A DNA stretch of 64,000 nucleotides, taken from Macrostomum hystrix. Its lineage: Eukaryota > Animalia > Platyhelminthes. The notes below the pieces were generated by a model, which saw nothing but the letters and a program-made list of their open reading frames with translations, was not told the DNA's origin and searched no databases. The stretch is taken from assembly GCA_950097015.1 (NCBI GenBank), contig CATNEN010000037.1:3286001-3350000 (forward strand). Direction: 5' to 3'. Both the position numbers and the translations under genes were made by a program. Each line of letters begins with the position of its first letter. Within the stretch, counting starts at the first letter, position 1. Shown here piece by piece: positions 1-64,000 of this stretch.

Positions 1-36
1 CAGTCAGATGGGAGTCATTCAGCAGTCAGATGGGAG
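1..36. repeat. Edge of a probable 22-bp tandem repeat (CAGTCAGATGGGAGTCATTCAG), cut by the window start
   Basis: CAGTCAGATGGGAG occurs at 1-14 and 23-36. Only about 1.6 copies are visible. Confidence 0.5.
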
Positions 37-2060
37 CCTTTTGGTTTCCCGGACTCTGGTGCAGGGAGTGCAGCTCGCTGATCTCAGAGCAAACCAGACC
101 CAAACTGCTCAGCAGGCTCGATTGACCAGCGCTGGAGACACCGTCAACTTCGCGACGATCGCTGACGCTGCTGCGCTCCAGACTGAGCAGCTGAGCCTCC
201 TCCAGGTTGTGGTTGCGCACCAGAATGCGGGCCACCAGCTCCAACTGGAAGTTCGCCTGACTGGCCACGTCCGAAGCGGCGTCTGGACCCGACCGGCACC
301 TGGAAAGGCTCGAGAGCGTCGCCGTCTCTTGGTGGCAGCCGTTTTCAGCTGTCGGCGGAGGGGCGGCCACAACGCGCACACTCGCCAGGGCTCCGGGCTC
401 CGGAATCGGGGTCTGCGCCGAGCTGGTAACTCGCTGCGGTGGCTTCTCAGCAGCTCGAACTCCAGCATCAGCAGAGGCGAAGTCCTTGAAAGTGCCGCAT
501 TCGCTGATCGTTGGAGGCTGCGTCTGCGTTGCCAAGGCTACCGTAGGCTGCACCTCTTTGAACTGGCCGAGTGTTTGCGCGGATATCGTAGACTTTGGAA
601 TCGGCTTCTCAGCAGCTCGAATTCCAGCATCAACGGTGACGAAGTCCTTGTAGCTTCCGTTCTCGCTGATCTTCGCTGGTGTGGTCTGCGTTGCCAAGGC
701 AGCCGTTTGTTGAATCTCTTTGAACTCGCCGAAAGTTTGAATCGACGAAGTTGACTTCGGAATCGGTTTCTCAGCAGCTCGAATTCCAGCATCAACGGTG
801 ACGAAGTCCTTGTAGCTTCCGTTCTCGCTGATCTTCGCTGGTGTGGTCTGCGTTGCCAAGGCAGCCGTTTGTTGAATCTCTTTGAACTCGCCGAAAGTTT
901 GAATCGACGAAGTTGACTTCGGAATCGGTTTCTCAGCAGCTCGAATTCCAGCATCAACGGAGACGAAGTCCTTGTAGCTTCCGTTCTCGCTGATCTTCGC
1001 TGGTGTGGTCTGCGTTGCCAAGGCAGCCGTTTGTTGAATCTCTTTGAACTCGCCGAAAGTTTGAATCGACGAAGTTGACTTCGGAATCGGCTTCTCAGCA
1101 GCCCGAATTCCAGCGTCAGAGGTGGCAAAATCTTTGAAGGTTCCGTTCTCGCTAATCTTCGGAGGCTGCGTCTGTGTTGCCATGACGACCGTTGGTTTGA
1201 CCTCTTTGAACTCGCCGATAGTTTGAGCCGATGTTTCTCCGCTCGAAGGCGCAGCTCGAATTCCAGAATGATTTACAGAAACGTCTTTGAATGCTCCGCA
1301 TTCACCAATAGACGGCGGCGTCGTCTGCGTCGCCAAGGCAACCGTTGGATGAACTTCTTTGAAGTCGCCGACAGTTTGCGCAGACGAATCGGACCTGCGC
1401 GGTGGCTCTTCAACCTTGCGCACCCCAGCTTCAACGTAGGCAAAGTCAACAAAGGCGCCGCACTCGCTGGCGAGTCTCTGCTGCGTCTGCGTTGCCAAAG
1501 CGACTGTCGGTCGGACCTCCTTGAAGTCGCCGACGGTCTGGGCTCCCCGGCTTTCTAGCTCGACGTCGAGCGAAGCGCCTGCGTCCACCACTGGCCGCCT
1601 GGGCGGATAGTTGCACTCCAGCCGCGTCACCGCATTGACGCCCTCGCAGCCGTCGCCGATCTCCAGTCGCTTGGCCGACACAAAGTTCCGATGTGGCAGG
1701 TCCACTGCCAGCTGGCGGCGCACCGTCAGCTCGGCCCGGTGAATCTCGCGCTCCACCCGGGTGGGCTGGTTCACCATCCAGTACATGCGGGTCACGTGCT
1801 GCTGCGGCTCCGCCGCTGGCAACGGTTCACCAGCCACGCTGCTGCTGCGCACGACGCTCCTAACACCGTCGGTGGTTGAGAGGCCGCTGCCGCCAGAGCC
1901 AGCGTGCAGCACCCGGTGAACCTCTTCGTTTATCACCGTGCTTGTCACGGTCCTAGAAGAGGCGACGGATAGGTTTCGTACGCGGCGCTGCGGCTGCAGC
2001 TGGGGCTGCTGCTGTTGCTTCTCCGCATCCATCTGGTTGGAGAACACATACACGCTGTTG
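26..2060 (-). CDS. Large, probably terminal coding exon: Gln-rich/low-complexity region, seven 54-aa repeats with TQT motifs, and a short C-terminal helix
   Basis: Lies in the 704-aa ORF 26-2140. Acceptor tttcacaatcgcattttAG|C (2062-2061) is phase 2 and completes GG+C = Gly; an alternative in-phase aacAG lies 6 nt further on. Stop TGA at 28-26. The first 26 aa of the ORF-track protein are intronic. Confidence 0.85.
410..1543 (-). repeat. Coding tandem repeat: 7 units of 162 bp (54 aa; one unit is 153 bp/51 aa) plus the start of an eighth
   Basis: The anchor a(t/c)tccagc recurs at 459, 621, 783, 945 and 1107 (162-bp steps), then at 1260. Consensus is about AQT(V/F)G(E/D)FKE(V/I)xxT(V/A)ALATQTxP.xISExGx(F/Y)KDF...DAG(I/V)RAAEKP.....S. 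1125 nt = 6x54 + 51 aa. Confidence 0.95.
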
Positions 2061-2214: not shown

Positions 2215-2366
2215 CCCTGTTGCAGCGATCCATCAGATTCGACTCGAATCTCCGGCACTGAGAAGCCCGGCGACAGCAAAGCAGCTTCGTCAAAGACTGG
2301 CTCAACCTCTGAGTTCGCCGAGTCCATCATGCGGTTGCGCAGTCTCTCCAGCGCGTCCACATGCTC
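2215..2366 (-). CDS. Internal exon (EHVDALERLRNRMMDSANSEVEPVFDEAALLSPGFSVPEIRVESDGSLQQ-G)
   Basis: Acceptor cttctgcctctacacatctgcAG|GAG (2368-2367) and consensus donor GG|GTaagt (2214). 152 nt, stop-free, phase 0 in and phase 2 out. Not in the ORF track. Confidence 0.8.
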
Positions 2367-2459: not shown

Positions 2460-2865
2460 ATTGAGCACTTTCAGCAAAGCTCTCGGCTGAATAACCTCCG
2501 ACTCTTTCAAAGACCTGGTACGTCGGCTGCTGCTCCGGTGACTATCGCTACGACCCAGGCCGCCTCCGCCGCCTCCGCCTCCTCCGTCAGTTGACGTCAC
2601 CGACGAGAGCGACACATTCGAGAGGCGGCGCTCCCGACTGGCCCGCACTGCCTGGTCGGACGGCGGCGACCTCTTAGCTCGGATTTGGCCAAGCAGGCGG
2701 GACAGGCCGGCCGCCTCCGGCTCGCTCAGGTAGCACAGGTAGCTAGACTCCAGCTCAGACATAAAGGCGAACAGAGAGGCTTCGGCTGCGTCCGAGTCTG
2801 TTGTGTACTGCGCGGTTTTAAAGTGCAACTGGTGCAAAAGGCCATTCTGTCCATTTCGCTGGCTC
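2460..2865 (-). CDS. Internal exon: helical segment (LHQLHFKTAQY...SLFAFMSELESSYL...LSRLLGQIR), then a Ser/Arg-rich linker with Gly9, ending ...RALLKVLN. The 5' boundary is uncertain.
   Basis: Body lies in ORF 2421-2873. Strong donor AAT|GTgagt (2459) is in phase with the next exon. The best acceptor (gtgctcAG|, 2867-2866) is one base out of frame with the body unless the T4 run at 2836-2839 is really T5. An alternative phase-compatible acceptor gives a start at 2797. Confidence 0.65.
2559..2585 (-). repeat. Coding GGA/GGC trinucleotide run encoding Gly9
   Basis: GGA GGA GGC GGA GGC GGC GGA GGC GGC read directly in the exon frame. Confidence 0.9.
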
Positions 2866-2936
2866 CTGAGCACGCACGCAAACAGGTGTGTACATCTGCC
2901 CTGACTTTTTGATCGTCAGGCAGTGTACACACTCAC

Positions 2937-3036
2937 CGTGCCTTGGAGGTTGGCCCTCTTGGGCGTAAAAGCCTCCAAGGCTTCTCTCCTCGGCCTCTCT
3001 CTCAAAAGCAACACCTCTCAGAACTTGAGTTGCTTT
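2937..3036 (-). CDS. Probable internal exon (KATQVLRGVAFEREAEERSLGGFYAQEGQPPRH-G)
   Basis: Acceptor tttttttgttttaAG|AAA (3038-3037), with an alternative in-frame cacAG giving a start at 3051. Strong donor CACG|GTgagt (2936). Phase 0 in matches the previous exon. No homology recognised. Confidence 0.6.
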
Positions 3037-3099
3037 CTTAAAACAAAAAAACTGTGAAGCTAAAAAAGCCGGAAAATGTAATAATATGATTTGCCTCAC

Positions 3100-3205
3100 C
3101 TTCTCCATGTGAATAAACTCAAGGAAGCTGCGAAATAGGTCCCCAACGTGCTGCTTGTAGCTGGTTAGAATCTGCACCCACACTGCTATGATAGTGTCGC
3201 GAAGC
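3100..3205 (-). CDS. Plakin-family gene exon after the giant intron (R-LRDTIIAVWVQILTSYKQHVGDLFRSFLEFIHMEK)
   Basis: Acceptor ttcttctcactgttacattgttacgaacccAG|G (3207-3206) and donor AAG|GTgagg (3099). The phase-2 join AG+G gives Arg, producing EALETMARLRDTIIAVWVQI. This parallels the post-SH3 helix of plakins (EA....R(I/L)E..Y..(V/L)..LW). Confidence 0.85.
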
Positions 3206-6200
3206 CTGGGTTCGTAACAATGTAACAGTGAGAAGAAATGATGGGTTGGCATTCATGAACGTTTCATCAATGACAACTAAAAAGCCAATCTTCAATGACC
3301 AGTTGAAAGCCAATCTTCAATGACCAATAGAAAGCCAATCTTCAATGACCACTAGAAAGCCAATCTTCAATGACCAGTTGAAAACCAATCTTCAATGACC
3401 AGTTGAAAACCAATCTTCAATGACCAATAGAAAGCCAATCTTCAATGACCAATAGAAAGCCAATCTTCAATGACCAGTTGAAAACCAATCTTCAATGACC
3501 AATAGAAAGCCAATCTTCAATGACCACTAGAAAGCCAATCTTCAATGACCACTAGAAAGCCAATCTTCAATGACCAGTTGAAAACCAATCTTCAATGACC
3601 AATAGAAAGCCAATCTTCAATGACCACTAGAAAGCCAATCTTCAATGACCAATAAAAAGCCAATCTTCAATGACCAGTTGAAAACCAATCTTCAATGACC
3701 AGTTGAAAACCAATCTTCAATGACCAGTTGAAAACCAATCTTCAATGACCAGTTGAAAACCAATCTTCAATGACCAGTTGAAAACCAATCTTCAATGACC
3801 ACTAGAAAGCCAATCTTCAATGACCAATAGAAAGCCAATCTTCAATGACCACTAGAAAGCCAATCTTCAATGACCAATAGAAAGCCAATCTTCAATGACC
3901 AGTTGAAAACCAATCTTCAATGACCAATAGAAAGCCAATCTTCAATGACCAATAGAAAGCCAATCTTCAATGACCAATAGAAAGCCAATCTTCAATGACC
4001 ACTAGAAAGCCAATCTTCAATGACCAATAGAAAGCCAATCTTCAATGACCACTAGAAAGCCAATCTTCAATGACCAGTTGAAAACCAATCTTCAATGACC
4101 AGTTGAAACCAATCTTCAATGACCACTAGAAAGCCAATCTTCAATGACCAATAGAAAGCCAATCTTCAATGACCACTAGAAAGCCAATCTTCAATGACCA
4201 CTAGAAAACCAATCTTCAATGACCAGTTGAAAACCAATCTTCAATGACCACTAGAAAGCCAATCTTCAATGACCAATAGAAAGCCAATCTTCAATGACCA
4301 CTAGAAAGCCAATCTTCAATGACCAATAGAAAGCCAATCTTCAATGACCAATAGAAAGCCAATCTTCAATGACCAATAGAAAGCCAATCTTCAATGACCA
4401 GTTGAAAACCAATCTTCAATGACCAATAGAAAGCCAATCTTCAATGACCACTAGAAAGCCAATCTTCAATGACCACTAGAAAGCCAATCTTCAATGACCA
4501 ATAGACAGCCAATCTTAAATGACCAGTTGAAAACCAATCTTCAATGACCACTAGAAAACCAATCTTCAATGACCAGTTGAAAACCAATCTTCAATGACCA
4601 CTAGAAAGCCAATCTTCAATGACCAATAGAAAGCCAATCTTCAATGACCACTAGAAAGCCAATCTTCAATGACCAATAGAAAGCCAATCTTCAATGACCA
4701 ATAGAAAGCCAATCTTCAATGACCACTAGAAAACCAATCTTCAATGACCAGTTGAAAACCAATCTTCAATGACCAATAGAAAGCCAATCTTCAATGACCA
4801 CTAGAAAGCCAATCTTCAATGACCACTAGAAAGCCAATCTTCAATGACCAATAGACAGCCAATCTTAAATGACCAGTTGAAAACCAATCTTCAATGACCA
4901 ATAGAAAGCCAATCTTCAATGACCACTAGAAAGCCAATCTTCAATGACCAATAGAAAGCCAATCTTCAATGACCACTAGAAAGCCAATCTTCAATGACCA
5001 ATAGAAAGCCAATCTTCAATGACCAGTTGAAAACCAATCTTCAATGACCAGTTGAAAACCAATCTTCAATGACCACTAGAAAGCCAATCTTCAATGACCA
5101 ATAGAAAGCCAATCTTCAATGACCAATAGAAAGCCAATCTTCAATGACCAGTTGAAAACCAATCTTCAATGACCAATAGAAAGCCAATCTTCAATGACCA
5201 GTTGAAAACCAATCTTCAATGACCAGTTGAAAACCAATCTTCAATGACCAATAGAAAGCCAATCTTCAATGACCAATAGAAAGCCAATCTTCAATGACCA
5301 GTTGAAAACCAATCTTCAATGACCACTAGAAAGCCAATCTTCAATGACCAATAGAAAGCCAATCTTCAATGACCAGTTGAAAACCAATCTTCAATGACCA
5401 GTTGAAAACCAATCTTCAATGACCACTAGAAAGCCAATCTTCAATGACCACTAGAAAGCCAATCTTCAATGACCAATAGAAAGCCAATCTTCAATGACCA
5501 CTAGAAAGCCAATCTTCAATGACCAGTTGAAAACCAATCTTCAATGACCACTAGAAAGCCAATCTTCAATGACCAATAGAAAGCCAATCTTCAATGACCA
5601 CTAGAAAGCCAATCTTCAATGACCAATAGAAAGCCAATCTTCAATGACCAGTTGAAAACCAATCTTCAATGACCACTAGAAAGCCAATCTTCAATGACCA
5701 ATAGAAAGCCAATCTTCAATGACCAGTTGAAAAACAATCTTCAATGACCAGTTGAAAACCAATCTTCAATGACCACTAGAAAGCCAATCTTCAATGACCA
5801 AAAGAAAGCCAATCTTCAATGACCACTAGAAAGCCAATCTTCAATGACCAATAGAAAGCCAATCTTCAATGACCAGTTGAAAACCAATCTTCAATGACCA
5901 ATAGAAAGCCAATCTTCAATGACCAATAGAAAGCCAATCTTCAATGACCAGTTGAAAACCAATCTTCAATGACCAATAGAAAGCCAATATTCAATGACCA
6001 ATAGAAAGCCAATCTTCAATGACCAGTTGAAAACGAATCTTCAATGACCAGTTGAAAACCAATCTTCAATGACCACTAGAAAGCCAATCTTCAATGACCA
6101 GTTGAAAACCAATCTTCAATGACCACTAGAAAGCCAATCTTCAATGACCAATAGAAAGCCAATCTTCAATGACCAATAGAAAGCCAATCTTCAATGACCA

Positions 6201-62730: not shown

Positions 62731-62984
62731 CTGGCCATGGTTTCAAGGGCCTCCGTGTCGGGTCCAAGGAGCGCCAGGCAGACGGACGGCAGGTCTAATT
62801 CACCGCCGCCGCAGGTAGCAGATCGCTCCACTCGCCACACGTGCCGATCGGTCATATCAACAACCGTCAGCTCCTCGTCCATCAGGACATGACGACCCTC
62901 CGGCGAGGTGTAGCTGCACAGAGCCACAGCGCGAGGCCTTTTTAACGGGGCGTCGTCCTTTCGACCCGGAATTCGATGATGCAC
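62731..62984 (-). CDS. Plakin-family gene exon encoding the plakin SH3 domain (VHHRIPG...RAVALCSY...WRV...LPSVCLALLGPDTEALETMA)
   Basis: Acceptor tctgtacatctccgccAG|GTG (62986-62985) and donor GCCAG|GTcagt (62730). 254 nt, phase 0 in and phase 2 out, in frame with the preceding exon. Matches the plakin SH3 signature ALCDY...W(K/R)V...PSVC...P..EA. Confidence 0.9.
62766..62933 (-). other. SH3 domain of plakin type (inserted in a spectrin repeat)
   Basis: ALCSY corresponds to the ALYDY-like motif. VWRV carries the conserved Trp. LPSVCL is the plakin-specific version of the PxNYV motif. Recognised from family knowledge, not from an HMM run. Confidence 0.85.
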
Positions 62985-63012: not shown

Positions 63013-63441
63013 GATTCCTAAAACTGTCAAATTCCTAAAACTGTCGAATTCCTAAAACTGTCGAATTCCTAAAACTGTCGAATTCCTAAAACTGTCGAAT
63101 TCCTAAAACTGTCGAATTCCTAAAACTGTCGAATTCCTAAAACTGTCGAATTCCTAAAACTGTCGAATTCCTAAAACTGTCGAATTCCTAAAACTGTCGA
63201 ATTTCTAAAACTGTCGAATTCCTAAAACTGTCGAATTCCTAAAACTGTCGAATTCCTAAAACTGTCGAATTCCTAAAACTGTCGAATTCCTAAAACTGTC
63301 GAATTCCTAAAACTGTCGAATTCCTAAAACTGTCGAATTCCTAAAACTGTCGAATTCCTAAAACTGTCGAATTCCTAAAACTGTCGAATTCCTAAAACTG
63401 TCGAATTCCTAAAGCTGTCGAATTCCTAAAACTGTCGAATT
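63013..63441. repeat. Intronic 17-bp minisatellite (GAATTCCTAAAACTGTC), about 25 copies
   Basis: 17-bp period (ctgtc at 63041 and 63058). Fills most of the 494-nt intron 62985-63478. Nearly all copies are identical. Confidence 0.97.
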
Positions 63442-63478
63442 CACAAAGTCCTGGAATCTTAGAGTTCTAGAGCTTTAC

Positions 63479-63691
63479 CGGCTGCACGCTGCCACTGCGG
63501 CCCGCCAGCTCCTGCGCCCGCTGACCCAGCAGCATCAGGCGCGACAGGTGCGACCGCATGCAGCCGGCCAGCCGGCGGCACTCGAACGGCAGGCTGCCCA
63601 GCGAGCGTCGATCGTTGGACGACAGATCGGCGAACACGCGCGCCTTCTCCTGCTCCAGATGGGCGTCGATTTCCCGGGCCTCGAAGAAGAA
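63479..63691 (-). CDS. Plakin-family gene, first exon in window: spectrin-repeat helices preceding the SH3 insertion (FFFEAREIDAHLEQEKARVF...QRAQELAGRSGSVQP)
   Basis: Acceptor tttctatttccaaAG|TTC at 63693-63692 and donor CCG|GTaaag at 63478. 213 nt = 71 stop-free codons. The translation parallels the plakin pattern FFxEAxE...L...LxxRAxxIVQLKPR of plectin/dystonin/MACF1/Shot. This frame is absent from the ORF track, which shows only wrong-frame ORFs here. The gene continues upstream beyond the window. Confidence 0.88.
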
Positions 63692-63745: not shown

Positions 63746-64000
63746 TGTACCAGAATGTACCAGAATGTACCAGAATGTACCAGAATGTAACAGAATGTGC
63801 CAAAATGTACCAGAATGTACCAGAATGTAACAGAATGTACCTGAATGTACCAGAATGTACCAGAATGTACAAAAATATACCAGAATGTACAAAAATATAC
63901 CAGAATGTACAAAAATGTACCAGAATGTTTCAGAATGTACCAGAATGTACAAAATTGTACCAGAATGTACCAGAATGTACCAGAATGTACTAAAATATAC
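63746..64000. repeat. Intronic 10-bp minisatellite (CCAGAATGTA, with CAAAAATATA-type variants), at least 25 copies, running off the window
   Basis: A 10-bp period is visible column by column. It lies upstream of the acceptor at 63692 and generates the spurious MYQNVPECTR and MYILVHSGTFW ORFs. Confidence 0.95.

Follow-up and report, generated by a model that had tools for sequence, protein, structure and literature searches.

The window analysed here, 64,000 nucleotides of the flatworm Macrostomum hystrix (GenBank assembly GCA_950097015.1, contig CATNEN010000037.1, positions 3,286,001 to 3,350,000), carries on its minus strand six exons of a single gene, the last of which encodes a tandem array of seven 54-residue units. 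The gene is transcribed and spliced, the array is under purifying selection, and the encoded protein has a plakin-type head. Each unit contains an invariant TQT, and we tentatively propose that these sites may form a seven-rung ladder for the dynein light chain LC8 on a rodless mini-plakin. An earlier note on this DNA had counted 14-15 LC8 motifs; whether or not LC8 binds, that figure has to be lowered to about seven candidates.

The 54-residue repeat array

Minus-strand translation bears out the seven-unit coding repeat that the earlier note had described and places it at 428-1552 within the last exon; Tandem Repeats Finder (TRF) also reports a repeat here. Ahead of the array this exon codes for a linker and a conserved middle domain, and after it for a C-terminal tail. 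Our comparisons are between two species, that of the window and Macrostomum lignano, whose array has six units; 12 distinct units were aligned. The features of the last exon are as follows.

26-2060, minus strand: last coding exon, made up of 677 codons and one base of a split codon, with the stop codon at 26-28 and an AG acceptor at 2061-2062 (from the open reading frame, ORF)
1553-1810, minus strand: orphan conserved domain of about 86 residues that immediately precedes the array; it shares about 90% identity with M. lignano and is the most constrained part of the exon (ratio of nonsynonymous to synonymous substitution rates, dN/dS, 0.15)
428-1552, minus strand: seven tandem 54-residue units, unit 2 having 51 residues (translation, TRF)
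1481-1504, 1319-1342, 1166-1189, 1004-1027, 842-865, 680-703 and 518-541, minus strand: seven TQT-anchored 8-mers (-5 to +2), candidate LC8 sites
1532-1555, 1370-1393, 1217-1240, 1055-1078, 893-916, 731-754, 569-592 and 407-430, minus strand: eight AQT/IQT 8-mers
29-427, minus strand: C-terminal tail after the array, with a low-confidence helix prediction, conserved in M. lignano (dN/dS 0.26)

Units 1 to 7 occupy 1391-1552, 1238-1390, 1076-1237, 914-1075, 752-913, 590-751 and 428-589, and on the DNA repeat TRF reports a period of 162 with 88% matches over 441-1226. The ATQT and the second xQT that the earlier note saw in every unit are indeed present throughout, as is its extra SSAQT after unit 7. 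From unit 1 to unit 7 the TQT 8-mers read VALATQTQ, VALATQTT, VVMATQTQ, AALATQTT (three times) and VALATQTQ, and the xQT 8-mers upstream of them ESRGAQTV, SDSSAQTV, GETSAQTI, STSSIQTF (three times) and STISAQTL; the additional VTSSAQTP lies at 407-430, and units 4-6 also hold an IQQT that had gone uncounted. The exon protein contains 18 QT pairs against 4.0 expected, all of them in or just after the array and 0 in the remaining 293 residues, and seven TQT against 0.33 expected, a number reached in 0 of 20,000 shuffles. The number of motifs reflects duplication of one unit, and it is therefore their conservation that provides the real signal.

The residues Q5, T6, G8, F10, K11, E12, T21, Q22, T23, D36, G43 and E48 are invariant in the 12 distinct units, save that E48 is missing from the 51-residue unit 2. 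The earlier note had asked whether the QT motifs are kept while the spacers drift. The QT motifs are kept, being invariant in the 12 units of both species, but the spacers do not drift: 32 of the 54 columns are at least 75% conserved, and conservation within the unit is highest in the 9 residues that separate the two QTs. Of 13 units, 12 have a length of exactly 54, although amino-acid identity drops to 46%. Window units 1, 2, 3 and 7 share only 54-72% DNA identity, yet they keep Q5, T6, T21, Q22 and T23, with synonymous codon variants among the window units at Q5, T6, T21 and T23 (Q22 is CAG in all seven), and the M. lignano units are only 73-76% identical to each other in DNA. The array is under purifying selection: at a dS of about 0.6-1.5 between the species, dN/dS is 0.20 for the array, 0.31 for the linker, 0.26 for the tail and 0.15 for the middle domain.

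Units 4-6 (590-1075) have a DNA identity of 98-99% and are, to judge from this, a recent triplication. Their copy number was taken from the assembly and from depth ratios; in three runs, the 161-nt short-read contig into which they collapse is 2.4-3.9 times as deep as the flanking contigs, as would be expected of about three copies. Compared with residues 669-776 of the M. lignano protein, window unit 1 (1391-1552) resembles M. lignano unit 1 in its first half and unit 2 in its second, and this hybrid looks like the expected product of an in-register unequal crossover. The hybrid and the triplication together show that copy number in the array changes by whole units. Within the unit there is a significant 27-residue half-period (z 3.4), visible in the pairs E9/D36, F10/F37, V13/V40, V17/I44, A20/A47 and P25/P52. 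An 18-residue sub-period suggested by E12/E30/E48 found no support (z 1.0).

The gene and its plakin-type head

The six exons lie on the minus strand in the left 3.2 kb of the window and, as two exons, at its right end, and all have AG/GT boundaries and an unbroken reading frame. Upstream of the last exon the gene comprises the following.

2215-2366, minus strand: coding exon (spliced contigs in runs X2 and X4; AG/GT boundaries)
2460-2807, minus strand: coding exon (spliced contigs in runs X2 and X4; AG/GT boundaries)
3100-3205, minus strand: coding exon, end of the plakin-like helical region (spliced contigs; AG/GT boundaries and reading frame; tblastn with the M. lignano protein)
3206-62730, minus strand: intron of 59.5 kb (TRF, composition, exon mapping)
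62731-62984, minus strand: coding exon with the plakin-type SH3 domain (Pfam SH3_10; tblastn; AG/GT boundaries)
63479-63691, minus strand: coding exon, spectrin-repeat-like helix before the SH3 domain (tblastn with residues 117-233 of the M. lignano protein; AG/GT boundaries)

The gene extends past the window end, beyond exon 63479-63691. Two public runs (X2, X4) have contigs that cross the junctions 2060/2215, 2366/2460 and 2807/3100 exactly, with minus-strand GT-AG, which shows that the gene is transcribed and that the modelled splicing is correct. The genome and DNA run X1 are colinear, and the reality of the last exon is also backed by the 1120-residue M. lignano counterpart. A plus-strand ORF at 8-754 and a minus-frame ORF at 538-1128 are by-products of the repeat, as the coding strand and frame are set by the splice signals.

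That counterpart, BOX15_Mlig023320g1 (Mlig023320; P0001), serves here as a full-length proxy for the architecture of the whole protein. It is the sole relative found among 5.8 billion clustered proteins (E 6e-270), and its residues 505-1120 are 57% identical to the last exon. Its cluster has four near-identical M. lignano members; one M. lignano cluster member is a model fused with the RING gene that follows the M. lignano locus. The plakin identity given in the earlier note is supported for the head by Pfam SH3_10, which scores 36.9 bits (cut-off 22.8) on the window exon at 62733-62984, and by matches of P0001 residues 101-314 to plectin (3pe0, 2.5e-9) and desmoplakin (3r6n, 1.8e-8); the head thus has the spectrin repeats with an embedded SH3 domain that define the plakin domain. 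Pfam found no coiled-coil rod, plakin-repeat, CH, EF-hand or GAR family on the window exons or P0001 at E up to 1, coiled-coil propensity not having been computed. The protein lacks a signal peptide. These observations are best explained if the array forms the tail of a plakin-like cytoplasmic protein that is small, rodless and specific to Macrostomum. Its head shares the spectrin-repeat/SH3 module of plakin domains with the plakin family (desmoplakin, plectin, envoplakin/periplakin and spectraplakins), but the M. lignano copy has only about 1,100 residues, and the orphan repeat of the tail was found in Macrostomum alone.

Searches with the whole exon, or with the head and middle of P0001, returned no homologue outside Macrostomum, and a profile of 11 units found nothing outside Macrostomum among 1.84 billion representatives. 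A sequence profile search of the PDB with the unit alignment gave no match, and in an ESM Atlas feature search neither the array nor the middle domain scored above 0.79, a noise-level value. For the middle domain (1553-1810) no Pfam, PDB or Atlas relative was found, and AlphaFold2 (AF2) predicts low-confidence helices there; the C-terminal tail (29-427) is without a Pfam match. Four further proteins (P0002-P0005) were rejected as chance matches to unrelated repetitive proteins. In the bacterial repeat protein P0003, a stretch of the form ATQT...GECGA.VDF, which we take to be HYR-like, resembles 20 residues of the unit, and the exon ORF has no Pfam HYR match. The Pfam family LRR_adjacent reaches 35.8 bits on the exon ORF with 13 residues matched and no single stretch passing, an artefact of summing over repeats. 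Short parts of the last exon also occur in runs X9-X13, labelled as other organisms and one sediment metatranscriptome, in some cases without differences (X9), and these runs may supply further Macrostomum orthologues.

A proposed LC8 ladder and its alternatives

In the reading that we tentatively prefer, while giving it less than an even chance, each 54-residue unit would be mostly non-globular on its own and would expose one proline-flanked strand, P-T-V-A-L-A-T-Q-T followed by P-P. An LC8 (DYNLL) dimer could take up this strand in its groove through beta-augmentation, the candidate LC8-binding peptides of the seven-unit tail being of the PTVALATQTQPP type. LC8 dimers would then bridge two parallel chains through seven sites at a strict 54-residue spacing to form a ladder, which would dimerise and stiffen the protein in the way that a coiled-coil rod does in other plakins. 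The other conserved blocks of the unit would not be LC8 sites and may serve packing between rungs or a second partner. In favour of this reading are the cytoskeletal head, the absence of a signal peptide and the lack of a fold in most AF2 models of the tail.

To judge the motifs we used the 79 binder and 32 non-binder 8-mers in Table S4 of Jespersen et al. 2019 (PMC6607443), tallied by hand. The same study defines five exclusion categories (a poor anchor, a hydrophobic +2, a bulky -2, a small -3, and a hydrophobic -4 larger than Ala) and describes -1 and +1 as buried in the LC8 groove and -3 as fitting a pocket for large side chains. In six of the seven window units the TQT site falls into none of these categories. 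Its anchor, Gln at 0 with T/I/V-type residues at -1 and +1, is present in all seven window units and all six of M. lignano. At -3, where a residue no smaller than Val is called for, stands Leu, or Met in unit 3, and 23 of 79 binders have an aliphatic or aromatic residue there; at -2 stands Ala, not a bulky aromatic, as in 7 of 79 binders. Position -5 is Val or Ala, and V/L/T/T at -5/-3/-1/+1 places hydrophobic or mid-sized residues at alternating positions. The site is flanked by prolines on both sides, with Pro at +3, and its closest counterparts among the binders are VSAATQTI, VAQGTQTP and SAKATQTD. Positions -7 to +1 are fixed, including P15, T16, A18, L19 and A20 N-terminal of the anchor, and +2 is variable, a conservation profile shaped like that of an LC8 motif.

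The AQT/IQT site does not share these properties. In five of its eight copies -1 is Ala, a residue that none of the 79 binders has at this position, and the single AQT peptide of Table S4, VDTAAQTN of IRS1, did not bind (PMC6607443); in units 4-6 it is Ile, and IQT occurs in 4 binders and 3 non-binders. Taken as a whole, the site lacks the anchor of known binders, which have T/I/V/S at -1. Position -3 is Ser, not the large residue expected, in seven of eight copies (Ile in unit 7), and +2 is hydrophobic (V/I/F/L) in seven of eight. Conservation lies C-terminal of the QT (G8, F10, K11, E12), outside the LC8 8-mer and on the wrong side for LC8. The AQT/IQT 8-mers are poor LC8 candidates and belong to an invariant block, AQT-x-G-[DE]-F-K-E. 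Because this site misfits the LC8 rules at -1, -3 and +2, about seven candidates remain of the 14-15 motifs claimed in the earlier note.

A number of observations weigh against LC8 binding even at the TQT site. Position -4 is Ala in six of the seven units, and Ala occurs there in 3 of 79 binders versus 3 of 32 non-binders, 74 of the 79 binders being polar at this position. Unit 3 breaks the rule with Val at -4, found in 0 of 79 binders, and one M. lignano copy (P0007) has Pro at -4 in its unit 6. At +2 the preference is for D/E/P, found in 49 of 79 binders, but the window units have Q or T there and three M. lignano units have L, and Q/T/L together account for 6 of 79 binders. The ELM pattern LIG_Dynein_DLC8_1 (non-Pro, x, K, x, T-Q-T), proposed as a check in the earlier note, is not matched, as -3 is Leu or Met and not Lys; this is a weak test, the pattern matching only 13 of 67 known motifs (PMC5746249). 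A perfect TQT is also carried by 18 of the 32 peptides that did not bind in isothermal titration calorimetry (Table S4, PMC6607443), and the anchor alone therefore proves little. Since Ala is strictly kept at both -4 and -2, the opposite face of the strand may be under constraint too. Outside the motif the unit is equally conserved: conservation reaches 75% or more in 32 of its 54 columns, and dN/dS across the whole array is 0.20. Each unit has four separate conserved blocks, the others being AQT-x-G-[DE]-F-K-E, S-E-C-G-A-F-K-D-F and G-V-R-A-A-E-K-P, and only the TQT block resembles an LC8 site. Finally, about 46 residues separate successive TQT 8-mers, whereas known LC8 rods use linkers of 3-5 residues (10.1101/2025.07.16.665182), and long linkers lower LC8 cooperativity in ASCIZ (PMC10046861). 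The LC8 reading of the earlier note thus stands in part: TQT is invariant in both species and six of seven units break no exclusion rule, but -4, +2 and the ELM pattern are off consensus.

Multivalent LC8 rods built from weak, non-canonical sites have been documented, KANK1 binding at least 15 LC8 dimers (10.1101/2025.07.16.665182). The array resembles such clients (ASCIZ/ATMIN with 7-11 sites, Nup159 with 5-6, the KANK1 linker L2 with at least 15, RSP3 and Chica) in carrying several TQT-type anchors on one chain in a region mostly without a predicted fold, and the expected outcome would likewise be a two-chain ladder or rod bridged by LC8 dimers; KANK1 illustrates that weak, off-consensus sites can suffice. 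It differs in that its candidate sites derive from tandem duplication of a larger conserved 54-residue module, and the spacing is therefore exactly regular and long (the 46 residues noted above versus 3-30). It also differs in that its linkers are under the same purifying selection as the motif, and in having Ala at -4 and no D/E/P at +2. The array does not qualify as an SQ/TQ cluster domain of the ATM/ATR-substrate kind. Such a domain is defined by at least three SQ/TQ within 100 residues, and the array has one TQ and no SQ per 54 residues, or about 1.9 per 100.

Alternatively, the array may fold by itself into a beta-solenoid-like rod that forms the shaft of the protein. Each unit would give two rungs of 27 residues and the whole array about 14, and QT and TQT would be stacked Thr/Gln ladders and not docking sites. 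We consider this somewhat unlikely. The best AF2 model of the whole exon, made from a 3-row alignment (mean predicted local distance difference test, pLDDT, 41; predicted template modelling score 0.44), is a regular parallel beta-helix with strands at positions 4-7, 16-24 and 33-46 of every unit (pLDDT 50-68). Residues 141-527 of this model superpose on SufD/SufB-type beta-helices with Z 15.4-15.6 and a root-mean-square deviation of 2.7-3.0 A over 213-222 residues, and its remaining structural matches are all beta-solenoids; a Foldseek search against the PDB gave no significant match. A self-folding rod would also accord with the significant 27-residue half-period, with a length held at exactly 54 in 12 of 13 units despite identity down to 46%, with Gly and Pro conserved at predicted strand ends, with Ala strictly kept on both strand faces and with units that fall marginally on the folded side of the charge-hydropathy line. 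However, the fold appears in only one of ten AF2 models and never rises above pLDDT 70. The other nine are unstructured, comprising four of the five whole-exon models (pLDDT 25-32) and every model from the deeper alignment (three units, 10 unit-shifted rows, pLDDT 36.7), where no secondary structure was predicted, and AF2 can produce solenoids for tandem repeats with shallow alignments. Hydrophobic residues at unit positions 4-13 and 28-40 recur with period 3, where beta-strands would show period 2, the units have about 10% proline and few large hydrophobic residues, and profile searches of proteins and the PDB found no homologue with a known fold. The likeness to right-handed parallel beta-helices (SufD/SufB, autotransporter passengers, curli CsgA) is thus one of geometry in a single low-confidence model (Z 15.6, 2.8 A over 219 residues), with 7-10% identity and no sequence relationship, and the matched proteins are bacterial or secreted, not cytoskeletal.

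The unit could also be a composite of short linear motifs, or a PEVK-type elastic spacer, and may bind a different periodic partner, for instance a cytoskeletal filament or a junction protein; the QT would then be part of the interface and LC8 uninvolved. Plakin cytolinker tails normally bind filaments, only one of the four conserved blocks per unit resembles an LC8 site, most AF2 models are unstructured, and the fixed unit length is what templating on a periodic partner would give. Nevertheless, the conserved blocks fit none of the SxIP, LIR, FxDxF, FFAT, PxIxIT, RVxF and WH2 motifs, the net charge of the units is about zero, unlike that of tails that bind microtubules or intermediate filaments, and no specific partner is indicated, so that we rate this explanation as improbable. 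An SxIP candidate, TPIP after unit 7, was discarded, being TPVP in M. lignano. Least probable by far is that the QT motifs have no function of their own and are kept only by recent duplication or gene conversion. The near-identity of units 4-6 in DNA and the differences between the species in copy number and unit history, including the hybrid unit 1, are what mere duplication would predict, but it does not account for the retention of Q5, T6, T21, Q22 and T23, with synonymous variants, in units 1, 2, 3 and 7 at 54-72% DNA identity, nor for M. lignano units at 73-76% and an interspecies dN/dS of 0.20 at a dS of 0.6-1.5. This explanation is largely refuted.

If LC8 does bind, no plakin-type cytolinker before this one would have been known to owe its organisation to the LC8 hub; no paper linking LC8 or TQT motifs to a plakin was found in the open-access literature. 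It would also offer a natural, evenly spaced and copy-number-variable LC8 ladder with long conserved linkers, useful for the question of spacing versus cooperativity. A broader version of the LC8 ladder, which we think unlikely, is that a plakin without a coiled-coil rod, whether lost or never possessed, uses an expandable array of TQT modules in its place. LC8 would zip two chains together over a length set by copy number (six units in M. lignano, seven here), and such LC8-zippered tails would be a flatworm solution for cytolinkers. In parasitic flatworms the dynein light chains have undergone duplication and are associated with the tegument (PMC7936022). M. lignano is tractable by RNA interference and transgenesis, which makes the idea directly testable. 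If LC8 does not bind, what would be left is a minimal plakin with an orphan, strongly constrained 54-residue (2 x 27) repeat, a matter chiefly for cell biologists who study flatworms.

Satellites and dispersed repeats in the introns

Most of the window is taken up by the 59.5-kb intron, within which a 25-bp satellite, repeated about 2,375 times in a single array, fills the 59.4 kb at 3267-62682. The satellite unit consists of two CCAAT-containing halves and occurs in three alternating variants, and its k-mer depth in DNA run X1 is about 4,000 times that of single-copy sequence. The orthologous intron of M. lignano has at most about 60 nt in the assembly. A transcript contig of run X4 continues for 976 nt upstream of exon 3100-3205 without touching 3210-3400.

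Nearly every intron of the gene has its own micro- or minisatellite in both species, with a unit that differs by intron and by species. In the window, satellites with units of 18, 17 and 10 bp occupy 2141-2218, 63014-63442 and 63746-63990, respectively, and the introns of the M. lignano locus (L001 10059-17731) hold AGAC, CTA, 15-bp, 24-bp and 17-bp units. In addition, about 100 bp of intron 2808-3099, at about 2850-2970, belong to a very abundant dispersed repeat, with a summed contig depth of about 1,000,000 in run X1 versus about 80 for its flanks, and many diverged copies and loose ends of this repeat are found in all four runs.

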